A stretch of DNA of 64,000 nt from Octopus bimaculoides. Taxonomy: Eukaryota. Shown in pieces: positions 6,570 to 55,425 of this stretch. The position numbers were made by a program, and so were the translations under genes. Location: contig NC_068985.1 in assembly GCF_001194135.2 (NCBI RefSeq), positions 33,545,660 through 33,609,659 on the forward strand, in the 5' to 3' direction. Positions within the stretch are counted from its first letter, which is position 1, and each line of letters opens with the position of its first letter. A model generated the notes under the pieces. The model did no database searches. It saw only the letters and a program-made list of their open reading frames with translations, and was not told the DNA's origin.

Positions 6570-7200
6570 GCATCTATCCACCAGAATCAAAGTTTATGAG
6601 GCAGCTGTCATCACCACTCTTTTCTATGAGTCAGAAGCTTGAATGTTGTACAGGAAGCAAGTGAAGCTGCTGGAATGCTTCAACTTGAGATGCCTTTGCT
6701 CTACCATGGACATTTCACGGAAGGAGTACATTGCCAATAATGATGTCCTCCAGCAGGCCAACATCTCACTTATTGAAACCATGCTGCTGTCCATCTAGCT
6801 CAAATGGACCGGCCACATCTTATGCATAGACAATCCAGAATGCTAAAGGCCATATTTTGCAGCAAACTCAACCAGGGCAAAAGAGACAGAAGCAGTCCCT
6901 GGAAGCATTTCAAAGATCAGATGAATTGCCAGCTCATCTAGGCAGGAAGAGACCCAACAGGGTGGAAGAGGGTCACAGCACAGAGGGTGGTGTGGTGAAA
7001 TTGCACTCAGATTGTTGCAAGCAATTTTGAGAAGGCCAGAACAACTGCAATGGATAGGAAACACCAGAGAGGGAAAGAGTCATTGTCATGACCCTCACCT
7101 GCATATTTGTCCCAGGTCCTGTCAATCAAGGATTGCTTTACAGAACCACTTGAGGGCTTGCCACTCTTCCTCATGATCTTTAAGAATGAGGAACTGCCTC
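6570..7200 (+). mobile_element. RTE (BovB-like) LINE 3' fragment, pseudogenised
   Basis: Frame-broken translation gives 'KVYEAAVITTLFYESEA*MLYRKQVKLLECF', 'LKWTGH', 'PECxRPYF' and a terminal 'ICPRSCQSRIALQNHLRAC' Zn-finger-like motif, as in RTE C-termini. Confidence 0.75.
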
Positions 7201-9755: not shown

Positions 9756-11465
9756 GGCTCACTCATCAAGATTTATGCTGAATCACTTAGTCACATCATC
9801 AAGTGTTGTAATGACAATTGTTAGGAATATGAAGTCATTATCCATGTATAGGATTCATTCTTTATTTGTAAATTTCTTGTTTTTCATTTGTCTTGGAAGT
9901 AACATTTCCAGCTGGATATGTTTCCTATTGTGTGCCATGTGTAGATGAGATATAGAGAGAGGAGAAAGAAAGCTAGAAAAAGGGAGAGAGGGAGAGAGAG
10001 AGTTCATCTTAGAGTCAAAATAAGAAATCCTATTTTGAATTCCAAACTATTGCTACACCATCTTATATAGACTACTTGCTCCAGCAATATGTAAAGGTAC
10101 AAATTTTCTGAAACCAAATTTTCTTAAGACAAAGACAACTAGGATAGAGTTTGGTCTTGGAGCTCAGTGCTATACAAAGGCTGTATACAAACCTATCCAA
10201 ATCAGTATGCCAGAGGTTAAGTTGTCCAGTGTTGATTCTCGTGCTATTGCCTCAGCACCAGCTTATAGAGTACAAAAGAGAAAAAGAATTCATTTTTCTA
10301 AAGAACTGAATATCTTAGTTGTTGAATATAGTTTCTTTAACAGAGGTTGAATTCTACTTTGTGTTAATATTATCACTGCCATTGGTAGGTGTCATTTGGA
10401 TTTACTTGATAGAAGTTGTGAATAAATAAGACATTTAACATACCTAGATGTAACTATCTCATCTATGGTGTGAGCAAGTTGGCATAATAACTGAAATAAT
10501 ATTAGTCAATGGTTAACATAATTTTTGTTTCTTCTTTTTTTTTTTACTTCATTGTTTAATTATATTTAGTTATCTCTTAATGCTCTTTGCATTAAATTTG
10601 TTAATACCAACTTAACTATTGCTTTTTCCATGGATGGCATCTCTGAGTAATTTATTCTTTAAAATTTCTATTTTTCTGTGCCAACTAGTGCACATTATTA
10701 CGTATTTATATAGTGATTCTCTCATCACTACTTCTGAAGGTATAGTGATGACTATGCTTTGTTGATGAGCTCATAATAATAATGAAACATGTCCAGAGTC
10801 ATCTCCTTTGCTGAAATAATTAAAATTATATTAGTCAATGATTATTATAATTTATTTTCCATTTCTACTTTATTATTTGCAGTTAGCTTTTTAATTTTCC
10901 CAGCATTAAATATGTTAACACTAAGTTAACTTATGATTTAAGTCTTTAAAATGGTATCCAATTTTCATAACATTAGGTTGTTTTGTTGGGGAAGCTTCAG
11001 CTACTAAATTGAACAGAGTGAGTCACTTGTGTTAATCCATAGATTTTATAAGCAAAGGCTTACATGAGCTTCAATGAAGTTCCTGGCTTTAAATTATTGC
11101 TTATTCCAATACAGCTGTGTAATTAGTACTTTTATTTTTTTGTCTTTTATTTAGTGTACTGTCATCCTTCAAAGGACTTTCATGTGTTAACAGACCATTC
11201 TTCACATAAAAAAAAAAACAGTTACAGCCATTGAACTCCCTGAAGCACAGTTCAATGGCTGTAGCAAGGATAAAATTCACGAATATATATATTCAGTCAA
11301 TTGGTTTTGGGAGTCATTGAGTCTAAATTTCAAACTTAATTATTGTAATTTACTTATGATTTTTGTATTTTAAAATCAGTTGCTGATTGTTGTGTGGAAA
11401 TTTTTGCTTTTTAATTAAATTGTTAATAAAGTTAATAAATTATTAACTACAATTTAATTTAATAT

Positions 11466-11494
11466 TTTTCTTTTTTTTTTTTTTGCAGGTAAGT
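11466..11494 (+). promoter_or_regulatory. Candidate recursive splice site (ratchet point): 3'SS immediately followed by 5'SS
   Basis: tttttc(t)14gcag|gtaagt with AG at 11487-11488 and GT at 11489-11490; branch-like 'tattaac' about 45 nt upstream; no intervening AG. Confidence 0.55.
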
Positions 11495-11829
11495 TTACAA
11501 GATTAATACAAGAACAATAACAAAAAAAAAAAAAAAAAAAAACCAAAATAGCAGAACATTTTATAAGAAATTCTTCTTTGGTAACTATAATGTTATATAA
11601 ATAAATTACTCTCTCTATCTGTAAAGTTATCCCAGAAGTATAATTTTTAAGTTAGAGAAAAACTATTGTTTGATGTCATTGAATGATGAAAATTTAGTGA
11701 ACCTTAGGTGAAGCTCAGCCTGGCAATTTGTTACTGAAATATTAATCTCCATGTTCACCATAATAGACCCTCAATTATATAAAGGACCAATTATGAGTAC
11801 TATCTTGTCATATGCTGATCATGTCTAAG

Positions 11830-12360
11830 GAGGGTGAGGTACAATGGTATTTTTTTGGTATGAGTTGTGCTTTATTTTTCTGTTGAGTCAATGCATTGGA
11901 GGATATTTTCAAAGTCCTTGTTCATGGAGTCAATGCAGGTTTGGTATTAGATGTTTAGCTTGCAAGTGTCTGATACTTGGGTATAAACAGTTTTGGTGGA
12001 ATGAAGGGTGGTGTCATCTGCATAAAAGTGCACATTGCTGGGGGGAGGGGTGATTCCAAGTCAGTCATTGATATATATGAAGAGGAGCATGAAGGACAGA
12101 ACTAAACCCTGAGGCACACCAGAGTTAACAGGGAGAACTTCATCAGTAAAGTCTGCAATACTATGAGCTGACAGGAAGATACCAATGCAAGTGATGAGAA
12201 ATGGGTAGAGCCCATAGATGGGCAGCAGATTTGTTAGGAGTTTCATGTGCCAGACATAGTCAACAGCTTTGCTGATGTTGATGGTATCAACACTGTTTTC
12301 ACCAAATTTCTCTAGGATGAGAACCCACTAATGAGTGACATGGGAGAGTAGATTTAGCTC
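11830..12360 (-). mobile_element. CR1-group (CR1/L2/Crack-like) LINE reverse transcriptase fragment
   Basis: Minus strand: 'NISKAVDYVWH', 'NSGVPQGLVLSFMLLFIYIND' (ORF 12061..12246), then 'HFYADDTTLH' (YADD motif). Confidence 0.8.
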
Positions 12361-13183: not shown

Positions 13184-14644
13184 GTAACTAAGTATGAGAA
13201 TTTTTATCATGCCAAATATCCATGATCCTGTTTTGATTCACGGTTGGGATTATTTCACTTCATTTTCATAGTTTGCTAATGGCAGTATATTTCCCCTTCC
13301 TTTAAACTCACAGTTTTCATTCCTTTCTATCCAAGAAACTATTATTAGTGGGGGGGGAAAAAGAATTTGAAATCACTCTAATCTGATAAAGTTCTGGTGC
13401 AGAAGAGAAAAAAATAGAATCATGGAAATTTTGTGAGCTGAGTATTCACCTCAAACTTTTGTATATTGTGTTTGGGACAAAGGCTTGTTTAACAGAGGTT
13501 TATTGTGTTGTAGGTTCTAGTGTTTAGCACAAGTCTTATGATTTGAAATAGGTGAGAAATAAATATCCTTCTGGATAGGATGTCAGTCTGTTCTAGGAGA
13601 TCATTATTTAGTCCAAGGTCTTCCATGAATGGCCAAAGCTATAACAGAGACATTTCAGCCATCACCTTCCTGTATTTTTTATCACTTGTTACAGTGCTTC
13701 GCAGACAAAATTATTCAATGTTTCCTTTTCTTTCAAGACATAGAGTATCATTTGAGGGACATTTTGCTGTTAATTATAGTAGGTTGATTGATCATTGCAC
13801 AGAGGCTTGCATATTAGCTCATGTATAGTAGGTAACAGGGTGTTTTCTTATTTCATTTGTCTTCAAAAGTGCAGAGCAAGAGTACACACATGTGTATGTG
13901 TGTGTGTTAGTAATTGTGTACCTTGTTACAAACTTCATCTACCAACTCAAGATTTAAATTCTTATTTTTGAATCCTGAAGAGAATTTATATCACCTATTG
14001 AGGAAGATAGGAGAAAATTCATTTTTACCACTTATTATTTCATTATATATGCAAAAACTTTTGTTTCATCATCACCTGCTATTGTGACCATAAATTGGTT
14101 TGAATTTCTATCAAAGACAAGAACAATTCTATTCAGGAATGCTGTTTGGTTACAGCTGAATTTTCACTTTTTCAAAGTGATAGCATCTGTTCTGTATTTG
14201 ACACCGTGGTTAGACTTTGAAGAGCCTGGAAGCATTTGAGCAGAAATACTTGAATATAGCTTTAAGTGTTAGTGAAGTTAATGAGGTCCAAATGATTGAA
14301 GCAGTTGATTTTGCATAGATTTCTCATTTGTTCCTGCTTTAATAGAGTGTCATTAGTCACTCATTGGAAAATACTTGATGTTCAGTTTTGTTATTTCATA
14401 TCTCTTTGAAATAAATTTGCCTTCACAACACATTATATATCTTTATGTGAGCGTGTGTGCTATTTTTGTGTGTTTGTATGTGTGTGCTATTTTGTATGTT
14501 TGAGTGCGTGTTTGCATTTAGAAATATGACTGTTTTAAAATATTATATTTCCAATCTTTCATATTTGCTCAATTTTCATTGTTATCCATAGATTGTATGG
14601 CCTTTATTTTGTTGTTGTAATTTGGCCTGATCAGTAGCAATGGA

Positions 14645-15530
14645 TAAGCCCTCATAAGCTTGCAAAGAATGAAGCCAGTATGCTCCGCTGGATGTGTGAT
14701 GTCAGTTTGCATACACGACAGAGTGTAAGTGCCCTGAGAGAAAAGTTGGACCTAAGAAGCATCAGATGTGGTGTGCAAGAGAGACGACTGCACTGGTATG
14801 GTCATGTGTTGCGAATGAATAAGGACAGTTGTGTGAAAAAGTGTCACACCCTAGCAGTTGAGGGAACCTGTGGAAGAGGTAGACCCAGGAAGACCTGGGA
14901 TAAGGTGGTGAAGCATGACCTTTGAACATTGGGCCTTACTGACTAGTGACTCAAACTTTTCAAGATATGCTATGCTTGAGAAGACCCAACAAGCCAAGTG
15001 AGACCATAACCTGTGGCCTATGCTAGCGGGTGTAACCAGCCTACTTATAAGTACCCTTCATTCATTGGACAATAAACTTTGCTTGTAAAAACCTGTTGAG
15101 ACAAGTGAAATCAAAATCAAAATCACTGACGTAGCTGATGACAGTACCACCTGATTGGCACTTGTGCCAGTGGAATGTTAAAAGCACCATCCGAGTGATC
15201 GTTGCCAGGGCTACTGATTGGTTCCCATGCCGGTGGCATGTAAAAAGCACCATTCGAGTGTGATCGTTGCCAGTGTTGCCTTACTGGCACATGTGCTAGT
15301 GGCACGTGAAAAACAACATTCGAGCGTGGTCATTGCCAGTGCCGCCGGACTGGCTCCCATGCAGGTAGCATGTAAAAGCACCCGCTACACTCTCGGAGAG
15401 GTTGGCATTAGGAAGGGCATCCAGCTGTAGAAACTTTGCCAGATCAGATGCAGTCTTCTGGCTCGCCAGTCCTCAGTGAACCTGTCCAACTCATGCCAGT
15501 ATGGAAAGTGGATATTACATCATCATCATA
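14645..15530 (+). mobile_element. 5'-truncated RTE-clade LINE: ORF C-terminus plus 3' UTR
   Basis: ORF 14680..14925 'RRLHWYGHVLRM..EGTCGRGRPRKTW' is a typical RTE C-terminus; the 3' UTR ends in a trinucleotide tail. Confidence 0.85.
15150..15385. repeat. Imperfect ~60-65 bp tandem repeat (about 4 units) inside the RTE 3' UTR
   Basis: Recurrent unit 'gccagtggc..gtaaaaagcaccattcgagtgtgatcgttgccag'. Confidence 0.75.
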
Positions 15531-15718: not shown

Positions 15719-16134
15719 NNNNNNNNNNNNNNNNNNNNNNNNNNNNNNNNNNNNNNNNNNNNNNNNNNNNNNNNNNNNNNNNNNNNNNNNNNNNNNNNNN
15801 NNNNNNNNNNNNNNNNNNNNNNNNNNNNNNNNNNNNNNNNNNNNNNNNNNNNNNNNNNNNNNNNNNNNNNNNNNNNNNNNNNNNNNNNNNNNNNNNNNNN
15901 NNNNNNNNNNNNNNNNNNNNNNNNNNNNNNNNNNNNNNNNNNNNNNNNNNNNNNNNNNNNNNNNNNNNNNNNNNNNNNNNNNNNNNNNNNNNNNNNNNNN
16001 NNNNNNNNNNNNNNNNNNNNNNNNNNNNNNNNNNNNNNNNNNNNNNNNNNNNNNNNNNNNNNNNNNNNNNNNNNNNNNNNNNNNNNNNNNNNNNNNNNNN
16101 NNNNNNNNNNNNNNNNNNNNNNNNNNNNNNNNNN
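15719..16134. other. Assembly gap (N run)
   Basis: 416 N, preceded by (AT)n. Confidence 1.
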
Positions 16135-20175: not shown

Positions 20176-21359
20176 TATATTTTTACAACAATTCTTACTT
20201 ATTATCACTATTATTATTTATATAAACAACATCAAAATCATAACAATTGAACATCATAAAAACAAACAGACTAGCATAAGTCTGACAACAAACCCCTCCA
20301 ACTTTCTGATTATTTACTTTGTCATTCATTTCAAAGCTATGATAAAAAATCAGTTGTCCTTTCTCTTTCTCTTACTCTTTCTCTTTCTTTAACTGTTTTT
20401 CCTTTTCTGTTGCTTTTACTGCATTTTTCTTTTCTTTCACCAGCTCTTTTGTGCTATTTCCTTGTGGGTATACAGGTACATACACATGTAAACATTTACA
20501 CACCACAAATTTCATCATTATTTTATATTATTTTGTTTGATATATTTCTTCTTGCTTTGTGATATAAAAATATATTTAGCTGGAAAATTTTTGAAATAAT
20601 TCCTGTAGACACATTGATATTTTCTGTTTTTAATTTATGAATAATGCAGCTTGGGATTTGAAACGTGCAAAATAAATTTTATGTTTTTGTATTATTATTT
20701 CCTATTAAAGATTATTTTGACTTCAGTAGAAGATTCCAGGCTTTTAACTTGTTTTTTTTTTTTTTACATTTTCTATTATTTTTATTCTATGTTTACCATA
20801 CATCATGCTGATAGAAGGTTTGACGATTCAAACTAAAAAGATCTTTAATGCATCATGTGTTTCAGAACCAAAATACACATTTTCAATACTACATGTCTCA
20901 ACGTCCATTCTTCCATCCTTTCCATCAGGCAGAAGAAACTGGCACTTGTATATTTGTCAATAGAATGGGATATATTACTATTTATACATTACAGTATTAT
21001 AGATCCATTTTAGTCAATTTTACCAATCAGTTTCACACATGAATTATGGGAGTGTCTGAAACTACACTCATCAAAAGAGCTATGGCTCTCTGCTACTGCA
21101 GGTCAGGAAATGTTATATCTAATTTGTAGGTGCTGTCAAAAAATGGAAGGAAAATACCACAGGGCGACATTCACAGTGGAATTCACCAACAATTATGCCC
21201 CTTATTCTCCTTTGAATCCTTTTCAGCCAAAAATCAGTGATATACTTTTCATACCAGACCTTCTAAGATACACTGTTTTACGTTCTCTCTTAACTCTTAT
21301 ATGAAATTGTTTGGCAGAATTGGGTGAAATACTATATTGTGTGTGTGTGTGTATATATA

Positions 21360-22664: not shown

Positions 22665-22960
22665 GCTCAAGTATTCAGCTTTTGATTGTAAGGTCATGAG
22701 TTTGATTCCTGGTGATGCATTGTGTCCTTGACCGAGATGCTTCATTTCAGATTACTCAGCTGAAAAAAAAAATGTCATACCTGTAATTCAAAGGGCCAAC
22801 CTTGTCACGTTCTGTGTCATGCTGAATCTCCTTGAGAACTACATTAAGGTTATGTGTGTCTGTAGAGTGCTCAGCCACTTGTACGTTAATTTCATAAGCA
22901 GGTTGTTCTGTTGATTGAACCATCTGGAACACTCATCGTTGTAATCAACAGAGTGCCAGA
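22665..22960 (+). mobile_element. Eroded tRNA-derived SINE, same family as 60937-61297
   Basis: 'gtggcttagtgg..gagtttgattcct' head; body 'aagggccaaccttgtcac..gtgtctgtagagtgctcagcc' matches the reverse complement of 60960-61090. Confidence 0.65.
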
Positions 22961-24323: not shown

Positions 24324-24640
24324 TGAAACAGTTTAGAGCCAAGTATAATTCTCTGCTTCAAGTAGCTTTCACAAAAGATTATCATGGACTGTAGGTGTCT
24401 GGTGATGAATAGGATTATCACTAATAATATAAGCAAGTAGTGAATCTGCAAAATCTTTTGGTTTGGTTACTATGGAAGTGAAGAACCTGTGTATGAAATC
24501 AATTTGATTCTTCCTATTTTGCTAGCTTTGAGGTCTCTCAGGAATATGGTTGAGTGAGAGGTTAAAATATCTGGTTTTCTGTTCTTATATTTTGTTGTTT
24601 TGCTTTTCCACTTAATAAAATAATTTCTGTTGCTTGTTCG

Positions 24641-24700
<60 letters not shown>

Positions 24701-25578
24701 NNNNNNNNNNNNNNNNNNNNNNNNNNNNNNNNNNNNNNNNNNNNNNNNNNNNNNNNNNNNNNNNNNNNNNNNNNNNNNNNNNNNNNNNNNNNNNNNNNNN
24801 NNNNNNNNNNNNNNNNNNNNNNNNNNNNNNNNNNNNNNNNNNNNNNNNNNNNNNNNNNNNNNNNNNNNNNNNNNNNNNNNNNNNNNNNNNNNNNNNNNNN
24901 NNNNNNNNNNNNNNNNNNNNNNNNNNNNNNNNNNNNNNNNNNNNNNNNNNNNNNNNNNNNNNNNNNNNNNNNNNNNNNNNNNNNNNNNNNNNNNNNNNNN
25001 NNNNNNNNNNNNNNNNNNNNNNNNNNNNNNNNNNNNNNNNNNNNNNNNNNNNNNNNNNNNNNNNNNNNNNNNNNNNNNNNNNNNNNNNNNNNNNNNNNNN
25101 NNNNNNNNNNNNNNNNNNNNNNNNNNNNNNNNNNNNNNNNNNNNNNNNNNNNNNNNNNNNNNNNNNNNNNNNNNNNNNNNNNNNNNNNNNNNNNNNNNNN
25201 NNNNNNNNNNNNNNNNNNNNNNNNNNNNNNNNNNNNNNNNNNNNNNNNNNNNNNNNNNNNNNNNNNNNNNNNNNNNNNNNNNNNNNNNNNNNNNNNNNNN
25301 NNNNNNNNNNNNNNNNNNNNNNNNNNNNNNNNNNNNNNNNNNNNNNNNNNNNNNNNNNNNNNNNNNNNNNNNNNNNNNNNNNNNNNNNNNNNNNNNNNNN
25401 NNNNNNNNNNNNNNNNNNNNNNNNNNNNNNNNNNNNNNNNNNNNNNNNNNNNNNNNNNNNNNNNNNNNNNNNNNNNNNNNNNNNNNNNNNNNNNNNNNNN
25501 NNNNNNNNNNNNNNNNNNNNNNNNNNNNNNNNNNNNNNNNNNNNNNNNNNNNNNNNNNNNNNNNNNNNNNNNNNNNNN
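24701..25578. other. Assembly gap (N run)
   Basis: 878 N, preceded by (CT)n(AT)n. Confidence 1.
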
Positions 25579-25915
25579 CTCAAGATACTTACACTCTGAC
25601 GGGTATTCACATTGACATTACACATCCAATGGAGCATACTGGCTTCATTCCTTGCGAGCTTACGTATGTCCTCAACAGTTACAGCCCATGTTTCACTGCC
25701 ATGTAGCATGGTTGTTCGTACGCATGCGTCATACAGTCTGCCTTTTACTCTGAGTGAGAGTCCCTTTGTCGCCAGCAGGGGTAAGAGCTCTCTAAACTTT
25801 GCCCAGGCTATTCTTATTCTAGCAGCTACACTTTCAGCGCACCCACCCCCACTACTAACTTGGTCGCCCAGATAGCGGAAGCTATCGACTACCTCTAGTT
25901 TTTCACCCGATGATG
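25579..25915 (-). mobile_element. RTE-clade reverse transcriptase C-terminal fragment, 5'-truncated at (TA)n
   Basis: 'LEVVDSFRYLGDQVSSGGG..RIAWAKFRELLPLL..KGRLYDACVRTTMLHGSETW..ASMLHWMC' is a typical RTE RT/thumb region; same family as 14645. Confidence 0.9.
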
Positions 25916-26892
25916 ATATATATATATATATATCACTTATTCTCTGGCTGTCTTTTTGTCTTGCTCCCACCCCACCTCCTCATTAATTGAGTCATTATTG
26001 TTTCTTGATTGATAAAATAAATATCAGTGAAATATACTTAATAACAGTAGAATCAATTGGCTTAAAAGAAATCACTACTGTTTATAGACTTGTATTTTCC
26101 AACTCTTCTCATTTTCACTATTTTTCTATAAACCGTTTTTCCTTCAGTGTCATCATTCCTTTCCCATTTTCTTAGAATCTAATCATTAACATTTTCTCCT
26201 TCCTTTTGTTTTTTTTTCCATAAACTATGGTTTGTATATTCATCTTTTAAGTATCTATCTTGAATATGAGTCACTTTCAGCAAAAGTTAAGTCTCTAGGA
26301 TGCTGAGTCTGCAGCCTAGTTTTGATTCTCAGAATGAGTCAATTCACTTCATTTTAGCTCTTTAGAAATGCATGAACATCACACAATTTTTCCCTGTTAT
26401 TTATGAATTTGTGCTCTGAAAAATAAGCTCTTAAAAATAAGATGCTTATCCATCCTTCCATTTCTTATTTTCCTCTCTCCGGCTTTCTTCAGTTTTCAGT
26501 CACCTTATCTCTGTTTTCTTCTTGGTCTCTCTCATGCACACTCACTGATTCTCCTTACACATAATGCAGGAGTTTCTCAGTGGTCATTCTCTTTGCAAGA
26601 AATAGCAACCAAATCTCTTGAACCACACCCTACTGTCTTATAAAGAGAAGAGCCATTGGATAATGTAGTCTTTTGTCTGAAAAAGAAAAGACAAGAAGGC
26701 CATGGTTGGAATGCTTTGATTTTAGGTTTGCTCAGTCAGGCTGAACTAGGAATGATAAACAACATTATATACTAGCTGGCCCCATGCCGTCAAAAATGAT
26801 GGCTAATTTTAGTATTTTATATATAAAAAGGGTACAGAAAGATGGGAAAAAAAATCAAACAGTGCTTTAGCTCTGTGTAAGTGTATGTGAGT

Positions 26893-39219: not shown

Positions 39220-39820
39220 CTTGTGTTTGTTCTTTGCAATCTCATATGTGCATGTATGTATGTCATTATTCAGTTTATTTCAAGATTTCTTGCCAATAGA
39301 GAAAGAACCAGTTTCTAACCTAGGTCCAAGGTTCATTCATTGGAATTTCAACATCAGCAACAGGGTATTTTTGTTTGTATGTATGTATGTGAAGATTTGT
39401 ACATTTTATGTATGTATTCTCATGCATATAGTTACATATCTAGACATGCTCATATATATTTAAATAATAAACTTCTGGAAAGTTTTACAGATTTTTACTG
39501 TTCCAGTGATGGATTAGATCTGTAGTCTTTGAATTAGCTTTCTCCTTTCTGATTTTGAGAAGCCTAATTTCTCAAGATTGGTATTTAGGTAGTGTGTTAC
39601 ATATCCCAGGGCCTCAATAATTACAGGTATAAACCTAAACTTGTAATCTAGATAGAGTAACTGCAGATTTCTTAATAGTTCTTTTTCACTGATGTTAACA
39701 TCCACTGGGCAGCTAATTTCCACAACTGTGCACTGTTTGTCTTCTTTATCCCAAATCATTTTATCAGGTCTGTTGTGCTTACATTTTATTGAGGTCTTCA
39801 CTGGTACATTCCACCAATGT
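39220..39820 (-). mobile_element. RLE-type (restriction-like endonuclease) non-LTR retrotransposon 3' end
   Basis: 'KHNRPDKMIWDKEDKQCTVVEISCPVDVNISEKE..KFRFIPVIIEALG' matches the RPD..D/ExxxP..E(K) motif of R4/R2/NeSL-type elements; followed by a 3' UTR. Confidence 0.8.
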
Positions 39821-39865
39821 ATATATATGTATGTATGTGTGTATGTATGTGTATATATATGTATA

Positions 39866-40032
39866 NNNNNNNNNNNNNNNNNNNNNNNNNNNNNNNNNNN
39901 NNNNNNNNNNNNNNNNNNNNNNNNNNNNNNNNNNNNNNNNNNNNNNNNNNNNNNNNNNNNNNNNNNNNNNNNNNNNNNNNNNNNNNNNNNNNNNNNNNNN
40001 NNNNNNNNNNNNNNNNNNNNNNNNNNNNNNNN
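39866..40032. other. Assembly gap (N run)
   Basis: 167 N. Confidence 1.
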
Positions 40033-40729
40033 AGGGAAAGAAAAAAAGGTTGTTTTACATTTCGAGGAAAACTCTTCTTCAGAAACAGGACAGAGGAAAG
40101 TGAGGTAAAAAATTGCCATGAATTGTAAAGTAATAAATAAAAACAGCTCTTGATAAGGTCATACTACTTAAATGTTTGACTGACTGGAAATTTTAATTTT
40201 ATTTATACATTTTTAACAATGCCTTGTGAGTGAATTTGGTGAACAGAAACTGTAAAAAGCTGTTGTATGTGTGTGCGTGCATACATGTCTTTGTGTTTGT
40301 CCCAGCCCAGCTGCTTGAGAACTGGTGGTGGTTTGTGTATGTCTCATTAACTTTGCAGTTTCAGCAAAATGGACCAAATAGAACAAGTATCAGACTTCAA
40401 AAAATAAGTGCCAGGGTTGATTGTTCAACTAAACCCTGCATACCCACAGTACAATAACTGAAACAAACAAAAGATAGAAGATAACAAATTAGTTTAGAAA
40501 TAGGACATATATCTAACTGCATTAATTTAAATTGCTGTTGCCAAAATAAGCAGAGATTGAGGGAATAATTTTAAGATTTCTTATATAGGTTAAATAATCT
40601 CTTAGCCATGTCTTAACTTGGGTTTAGTAACTTCAGATTGAAATCAGTTCTCTTCTCTTGTGTCATTTGTGTAAAGTATGAATGATTCATAGGCCCATTC
40701 ACTTCCATACATATTTTATTTTTATCATC

Positions 40730-44934: not shown

Positions 44935-45170
44935 TCAATGCTGTATATGCCATAAATCTAACGGAGGCCTCAAAAGACATTTTAAGATCCACAAAGATCA
45001 GAACTTAACTGTAGCTCTTGATGGCCCAAATCAGATATGCAATCTATGTAGCTATCTTTTCAAAACATTCTCTGGTTTAAGAGGCCACATCAGATACCAT
45101 TATAGATCTAAGGTGTAAGTACAAGAGGTGGTCAGACTCTGCATAAGGAGTAGACAACCACCATGTATGT
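44935..45170 (+). mobile_element. Fragment encoding one partial and one complete C2H2 zinc finger; probable RTE-type LINE 3' end
   Basis: '..CHKSNGGLKRHFKIH' and 'CNLCSYLFKTFSGLRGHIRYH' (C-x2-C-x12-H-x3-H); stop at 45116-18; short 3' region; (GTAT)n on both sides. Confidence 0.6.
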
Positions 45171-50481: not shown

Positions 50482-50506
50482 NNNNNNNNNNNNNNNNNNN
50501 NNNNNN
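50482..50506. other. Assembly gap (N run)
   Basis: 25 N. Confidence 1.
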
Positions 50507-54362: not shown

Positions 54363-55230
54363 GTAGGCAATTATGGAGTGAATATTAGGGCTTATAAATC
54401 TAATATTCTCTTATCCTTCCTTAATACTGGTTCCCATATGCTGTTCATATCTGCACTCAGTCTGCTTAGAAGATTGTTGTGTCCTAGCATATGTACTGCT
54501 TCTTTTAGTTTCTGTATTTTCCACTGGCGTTCTCTGTCCATTATTTTAACTTCATCCCACAGAGGGAGGTGGTCTCCATTTTCCCATACATGATCAGCTA
54601 TGCCCGATTTATCAATATCACCCCATGTCACAGCTTTACAATGTTCCTCTACCCTTATTTTGAGGGGATGGCATGTTTCGCCTTTGTATAACCTACCACA
54701 GCTGCATGGGATGGAGTACACACAGTTCTTAACCATATTCTCTTCTGTTGGTGGTTTTACTCGAAGGAGATATTATTTGCAAAGTGTTGTATTACTTTTG
54801 AATACTGTCCTGATGTCGTATGAGCTGCATATCTTTTGTATCTTTTCGGAGTGGCCTTTCACATTGGGTAGACAGACTGTGGACAGTTTATCGGTTTCAT
54901 CCCCACTTTCCTTCATAATTGGAGTGGATAGTATACTTTTGAGGTAGTTGTTGCTTAATAGATTGTTATTGAGCTTGATCATTTCTTCATGGTGGGTATC
55001 ACGATCACTACTTATATTCATTGCTCAATGTTTTAGGCACTGAGCAATCCCTCTCTTTACACTGTATGAATAGTGGGTATCATTGAGGTATCGTCCAATG
55101 AAGGTTAGCTTGCAGAATACAGATGTCCTGAATCCATACTTGGTGCGTGTTATTTATATGTCCAGGAATGCTAGCTGATTGTCTTTTTCTTTTTCCATTG
55201 TGAACTGTATGGATGGCTTTATTGAGTTCA

Positions 55231-55425
55231 CATGCAGCTGTGGTAGGTTATACAAAGGCAAAACATGCTGCCCCCTCAAAATAAGGGTAGAGGAACATTG
55301 CAAAACTGTGACACAGGAAGGTATTGATAAATTGGGTATAGCTGATCATGTATGGAAAAATGGAGACCACCTCTTAAAATAATAGACAGAGAACGCCACT
55401 GGGAAATACGAAAACTAAAAGAAGC
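55231..55425 (+). mobile_element. Inverted second copy of the Penelope GIY-YIG segment
   Basis: 'TCSCGRLYKGKTCCPLKIRVEEHCKTVTQEGIDKLGIADHVWKNGDHL' matches 54498-54707 in opposite orientation, with an internal deletion of about 17 nt. Confidence 0.9.

Follow-up and report, generated by a model that had tools for sequence, protein, structure and literature searches.

Introduction

Recursive splicing is known from flies and vertebrates, and the fly sites include the ratchet points of Drosophila. Among 197 fly ratchet points, 196 carry TT at positions -5/-6, and in the long introns of Drosophila motifs as strong as the one described below are mostly real (10.1101/006163). Fly recursive sites lie near the middle of very long introns, whose interiors are free of exons (PMC6110457), and the donor of the ratchet point is stronger than that of its RS-exon (PMC8605326). 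Few fully suppressed ratchet points are known from introns in the large genomes of vertebrates (PMC8605326, PMC8797253).

The literature searched contains no account of recursive splicing in octopus or other cephalopods; a single paper in it mentions cephalopods, once and in passing. The genomes of coleoid cephalopods are large, and long introns are presumed for their neural genes. An earlier note on a 64-kb stretch of octopus DNA (the window, whose whole length was analyzed) had proposed a ratchet point at 11488/11489 of the + strand, together with a possible cryptic RS-exon. The present analysis shows this site to be a reasonable candidate, not a finding.

A Ratchet-Like Motif at 11488/11489

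On direct reading of positions 11465-11494 of the + strand, a pyrimidine tract of structure T5-C-T14 (TTTTTCTTTTTTTTTTTTTT, 11465-11484) is followed by the acceptor-like GCAG (11485-11488) and the donor-like GTAAGT (11489-11494), with no gap between AG and GT. The fusion of the three elements had been reported before, and its coordinates are exact. All 20 nucleotides of the tract are pyrimidines, positions -5/-6 are occupied by TT (11483-11484), and CAG plus GTAAGT make up the full 9-nt complement of U1. The nearest upstream AG is at 11430 and none is found at 11431-11486, which leaves an AG-free zone of 57 nt. The branch-point-like TATTAAC mentioned in the earlier note is likewise present, at 11441-11447 (+), and its A at 11446 precedes the AG by 42 nt. 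Six YTNAY branch-like motifs, this one included, lie at 11411-11462, 26-74 nt upstream. The branch point adds little, because six such motifs occur in 60 nt of a stretch whose A+T content around the site is 85%. Beyond GTAAGT, the sequence reads TTACAAG...AATAAC, a run of 21 A residues (A21), and CCAAAAT...TTCTTTG(11580)|GTAACT.

As judged from these letters, 11488/11489 has the sequence hallmarks of a Drosophila-type ratchet point. Every Drosophila sequence criterion is present, including a donor far above any downstream one (10.1101/006163; PMC8605326), which argues for a genuinely used zero-nucleotide ratchet point in a + strand intron of more than 64 kb in an octopus gene. We regard such use as possible, if somewhat doubtful. 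In a first step, which would use the T tract and the CAG together with a branch point near 11446, the upstream exon would be joined to 11489 and would come to abut GTAAGTTTACAAGATT. This joining would regenerate an exon|GTAAGT junction, which would act as the donor for the remaining intron. Recognition of the site would proceed via a cryptic RS-exon whose last nucleotide is 11580, 11707 or 11833, and which would then always be skipped.

Rank within the Window and Chance Expectation

Sites were scored with a simple donor matrix (positions -3 to +6) and a pyrimidine-tract acceptor score, the frequencies being our own approximation of the metazoan consensus. On the + strand, the donor at 11489 (8.8 bits) ranks first among 3725 GT sites and the acceptor 14th among 3512 AG sites. 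The combined site comes out on top of the 370 AG|GT junctions on both strands, with 16.1 bits versus 11.1 for the runner-up, and it is therefore an extreme outlier in the window, 5 bits above the next AG|GT; this rank counts in favor of a ratchet point. The runner-up, CTGCTACTGCAG|GTCAGG at 21102 (+), has a much weaker pyrimidine tract and donor.

The 9-mer CAGGTAAGT occurs once on the + strand of the window and never on the - strand, and the hexamer GTAAGT alone is found 15 times on each. The pattern Y12-N-CAG-GTAAGT has a single exact match in the window; five other places need three mismatches and are not splice-like. Within the 64-kb window no second copy of 11400-11600 was found, and a 24-mer spanning the junction had no match in a metagenome scan. 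The acceptor half is less exceptional. The earlier note had counted it among the few strong acceptors of the 64 kb, a description that does not hold: the window contains 43 loose acceptor-like sites (at least 17/20 pyrimidines followed by NYAG; 26 on the + strand and 17 on the - strand), and 29 AG sites score as high as the acceptor at 11488 or higher.

The chance rate is the product of two terms: how often strong acceptors or long pyrimidine tracts were observed, and the probability of the 9-mer, either observed or from a Markov model. Given the window's own composition, 0.0003-0.008 such sites are expected per 64-kb window, and at that scale the earlier claim that the motif is unlikely by chance stands. 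The octopus genome comprises about 2.7 Gb. Scaled to this size, the expectation becomes ~13-330 chance sites, or ~70-115 for the exact pattern Y>=18/20-NCAG|GTAAGT, and for a whole genome the claim fails. Such motifs will therefore turn up by chance when many windows are scanned, and the motif by itself does not establish function. The tens to hundreds of equal motifs expected per genome by chance also weigh against a used ratchet point.

The most likely reading, to which we assign a probability of about 0.55, is that the juxtaposition is due to chance and is unselected. A slippage-prone T homopolymer would have come to adjoin the 9-mer by chance, in a setting that is locally 85% A+T, laden with transposons and free of exons, and the site would be DNA without a dedicated function. 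The spliceosome would see it only if the + strand were transcribed through 11489, in which case it would act as a cryptic or recursive site regardless of selection. We infer that 11488/11489 is probably neither under selection nor in use.

Downstream Donors and Pairing of the T Tract

The cryptic RS-exon that had been proposed is a hypothetical exon of 92 nt at 11489-11580 (+), which would contain the A21 run and end at the weak donor-like GTAACT at 11581-11586 (+; 0.18 bits, top 9% of GT sites). This second donor-like site, TTTG|GTAACT, is present at 11580/11581 as described, but it fails as evidence for an RS-exon, since for 44% of + strand positions a donor at least as good is found 30-150 nt downstream. 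Support for the proposed exon does not rise above chance, and a nearest RS-exon donor at chance level argues against a ratchet point. Two further donor-like sites follow on the + strand, TAG|GTGAAG at 11708 (2.2 bits) and the stronger AGG|GTGAGG at 11834-11839 (6.7 bits), the latter of which would give a cryptic exon of 345 nt. The donors at 11581, 11708 and 11834 are all weaker than the 8.8-bit donor at 11489.

The strong donor at 11834 also bears on another explanation, in which the acceptor half or the donor half serves as an ordinary splice site of an exon that is unannotated and probably non-coding, for example one at 11489-11833 or one ending at 11488. This would be consistent with the location of that donor on the same strand, 345 nt downstream, and with the fact that the acceptor and the donor at 11488/11489 are each strong alone. 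However, the interval is A+T-rich and contains A21, and neither an open reading frame nor a protein match was found across it. An ordinary exon boundary is thus the most improbable of the explanations considered here.

The T tract has a potential pairing partner. A segment composed of a C and part of the A run (11521-11541, +) is 95% complementary to 11465-11485, the A21 run itself spanning 11522-11542, 36 nt downstream of the tract. The predicted RNA fold places AG|GU in the loop of a U:A stem of ~20 bp (z = -2.1). Such a stem could, in this model, compete with U2AF binding and mask the pyrimidine tract, which speaks against use as a ratchet point; binding during transcription could pre-empt the stem. 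It would be pure speculation to propose that a duplex between the U tract and A21 modulates access to the tract and is an ADAR substrate in this heavily RNA-editing animal. A separate structure, an inverted repeat whose 17 bp match perfectly around a loop of 11 nt, is found at 11221-11265 (+), 225 nt upstream of 11489. Its predicted RNA minimum free energy is -26.3 kcal/mol (z = -7.4 relative to shuffled sequences), and it has no match in Rfam; a transposon end is one possible source.

Transposon Surroundings

The window has a G+C content of 33% and four assembly gaps, in the form of N runs at 15719-16134, 24701-25578, 39866-40032 and 50482-50506 (1486 N in all) that are flanked by (TA/TG)n-type microsatellites. 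Repeats within the window total ~8.9 kb. Frames resembling reverse transcriptases (RT), GIY-YIG domains and SINEs can be read by eye, and on this reading the window appears full of transposon debris. Fragments that look like the C-terminal part of LINE RTs are discernible by eye in both orientations, at 6627-7173 (+), 14638-14922 (+), 24612-25970 (-) and 39514-40119 (-), and two of the four adjoin assembly gaps. A GIY-YIG-like motif (YSIPCSCGRLYKGET...) can likewise be made out in two diverged and opposed frames, at 54392-54772 (-) and 55179-55379 (+), which we take to be debris of Penelope-like retroelements. Searches of Rfam at the gathering threshold over the whole window, and at E<=1 over 10.9-12 kb, gave nothing real, and no tRNAs were found in the window. 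The possibility that the site reflects a minus-strand pseudogene of U1 snRNA was considered and rejected, because by eye the similarity stops at the 9-nt complement that is common to any perfect donor.

The nearest recognizable transposon is a decayed LINE RT fragment (SGVPQG ... FYADDT) at 11896-12354 on the - strand, ~400 nt from the site. An 88-aa open piece of it has 261 relatives in a full HMMER scan, an earlier word-indexed search with the decayed RT having returned no matches, and tblastn with eight of these relatives places the homology at 12354-11896 (-). These relatives carry 266-301 further residues after YADD, which would span 11489 if undeleted. A location of the site within an antisense LINE is possible on these grounds, but it was rejected as an assignment: RT homology ends at ~11896, and a C-terminal HMM finds nothing across the site. 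More generally, neither HMM nor tblastn detected homology to the C-terminal 270-300 residues of the relatives in 11485-11895, the only 'hit' to that region between 11896 and the site being low-complexity poly-F (E 0.7).

These data bear on the idea that the splice-like motif is transposon-derived, coming from an antisense poly(A) tail, from the 3' part of a minus-strand LINE, or from the tail of a retroposed copy on the + strand (37 nt followed by A21). In that event the acceptor-like tract would have arisen incidentally, in the manner of Alu-type exonization. Pyrimidine tracts are known to derive from antisense poly(A) tails. The minus-strand RT fragment, whose relatives carry further residues that would cross 11489 if undeleted, is consistent with such an origin, and the uninterrupted T14 and A21, 36 nt apart, look young and non-random. 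Against this stand the lack of detectable homology between 11896 and the site, the lack of a second copy in the window, and the A21 run, which would break up a single element. No target-site duplication was found beyond a chance 10-mer. In particular, a retroposed copy ending in A21 was rejected, since the only candidate duplication, 10 nt of A+T-rich sequence offset by 15 nt, is expected by chance. We consider a transposon origin of the motif unlikely.

Exons, Host Gene, and Strand Asymmetry

The search for coding exons started from all stop-to-stop frames of the window. Frames that were recognizably transposon-derived, repeated within the window or of low complexity were removed, and the rest were ranked by amino-acid composition. 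The top ~10,000 aa, corresponding to 180 frames of at least 30 aa on both strands, were compared with 5.8 billion proteins as two concatenated queries of 5,000 aa. No convincing coding exon was recognized among these top ~10,000 aa on either strand of the 64-kb window, a selection that covered about one third of the short frames, by an approach that is blind to non-coding exons. Only ten open intervals in the 64 kb have a decent acceptor and donor, none of them protein-like. Frames of at least 48 aa from 1-16.5 kb gave no matches in a phmmer search of the PDB, and an exact look-up of three window ORFs and of the protein P0151 (see below) found no annotated contig on record.

The sole match of the protein search was P0151 (UniRef A0A0L8HIS0_OCTBM), a protein of Octopus bimaculoides that carries dynein-heavy-chain domains. 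The match is confined to residues 9-115 of this protein and lies at window positions 61295-60938 (-), with ~85% identity at the protein level. The matching stretch, which in our reading translates like the head of a tRNA-derived SINE, recurs in inverted orientation at 22781-22874 (+), where the identity is 85%. A dynein gene at 61295-60938 was therefore rejected in favor of a dispersed SINE-like repeat, and because the matching piece is such a repeat, the match provides no evidence for a gene in the window. The N-terminus of the A0A0L8HIS0_OCTBM gene model is probably repeat-derived.

A C2H2 frame at ~44940-45115 (+) contains one classical finger (C-x2-C-x12-H-x3-H) and one degenerate finger, ends at AAG|GTGTAAGT, and lies between a SINE with a microsatellite and another repeat. 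It had been removed by the low-complexity rule and was compared with the PDB only, where it gave weak zinc-finger matches (E ~0.01). A stray ZNF exon is one possible identity of this frame, a pseudogene another.

The window could thus be part of an intron of more than 64 kb or an intergenic desert. Its exon-free character resembles the interior of a very long intron and in this respect agrees with a ratchet point (PMC6110457). It does not discriminate between a ratchet point and a chance juxtaposition, however, because the very long introns that hold fly recursive sites look the same as this window (PMC6110457).

Strand asymmetry gives some indication of the direction of transcription. With homopolymers and microsatellites masked, T exceeds A by 4.3% on the + strand, in 14/16 4-kb bins (z = 8.6), and there is no G/C skew in the window. 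An excess of T over A on the coding strand is a general rule for transcribed regions, according to the part of PMC5786239 that cites Touchon et al. The skew weakly favors sense transcription of the + strand, by a rule that is uncalibrated for cephalopods, and to this extent argues for a ratchet point (PMC5786239). It could also stem from transposon composition or replication. Long pyrimidine tracts are about twice as common on the + strand as on the - strand (1.6% vs 0.8% of 20-nt windows). The poly(A) signals on the + and - strands (AATAAA, 84 vs 93; ATTAAA, 46 vs 66) are uninformative as to strand, because the T>A skew must be allowed for.

Weighing the Evidence

A chance juxtaposition is favored by the ~13-330 chance sites per genome, by the abundance of homopolymers of at least 10 nt (12 of T and 12 of A in the window) and by the local A+T content of 85%. 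It is further favored by the 43 acceptor-like sites, the chance-level downstream donor, the transposon debris and the fact that no exon was found, as well as by the ability of the T tract to pair with A21. The outlier rank of the site (5 bits above the next, with the best donor), the TT at -5/-6 and the 57-nt AG-free zone with its branch-like motifs speak against chance, as do the T>A skew of the + strand (PMC5786239) and the observation that such motifs are mostly real in flies (10.1101/006163).

For a used ratchet point, the scarcity of fully suppressed ratchet points in large vertebrate genomes (PMC8605326, PMC8797253) and the absence of cephalopod recursive splicing from the literature searched are further arguments against. 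The probabilities given to the various readings take into account the chance background of 13-330 sites per genome, the possible number of true sites, and the T>A skew, whose small boost is offset by the possible U:A stem.

If the site were a true ratchet point, it would give cephalopods, or lophotrochozoans, their first described site of recursive splicing. A validated site would extend recursive splicing from flies and vertebrates to a third major animal lineage and would supply a motif with which to seed a search of the whole genome. For this, one motif is not enough, and its value is that of a candidate to be examined with RNA data.

Comparison with Known Systems

Alu-type exonization resembles the situation at 11488/11489 in that a long T homopolymer provides a ready pyrimidine tract beside an AG, with an opposite-strand LINE fragment close by in the octopus case. 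It differs from Alu-type exonization in that homology across the site, a target-site duplication and a second copy within the window were all looked for and not found.

The vertebrate recursive-splicing exons of long neural genes, of the type described by Sibley et al. (2015), occur as in octopus in a large, intron-rich genome, and their recognition by way of a cryptic exon that has a donor further downstream is also what would be proposed here. The vertebrate sites are defined by RNA evidence and conservation, while the octopus site is known from its sequence alone.

The Drosophila ratchet points are a further close parallel, although several features set them apart. The octopus genome is ~20 times larger than that of Drosophila, and the chance background is far higher for that reason. 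The Drosophila RS-exon is ~50 nt long, whereas the candidate here is 92 nt or longer, with a donor at chance level. The tract at the octopus site is a homopolymer able to pair with the downstream A21, and the site has been recognized in DNA only. On the other hand, the zero-nucleotide ratchet points of Ubx, kuz and Bx share with it the direct juxtaposition of AG and GT, the long U-rich tract, the TT at -5/-6 and the CAG|GTAAGT itself. As in Drosophila, the octopus ratchet-like donor lies well above the nearby downstream donors, and its setting is exon-free (10.1101/006163; PMC8605326; PMC6110457).
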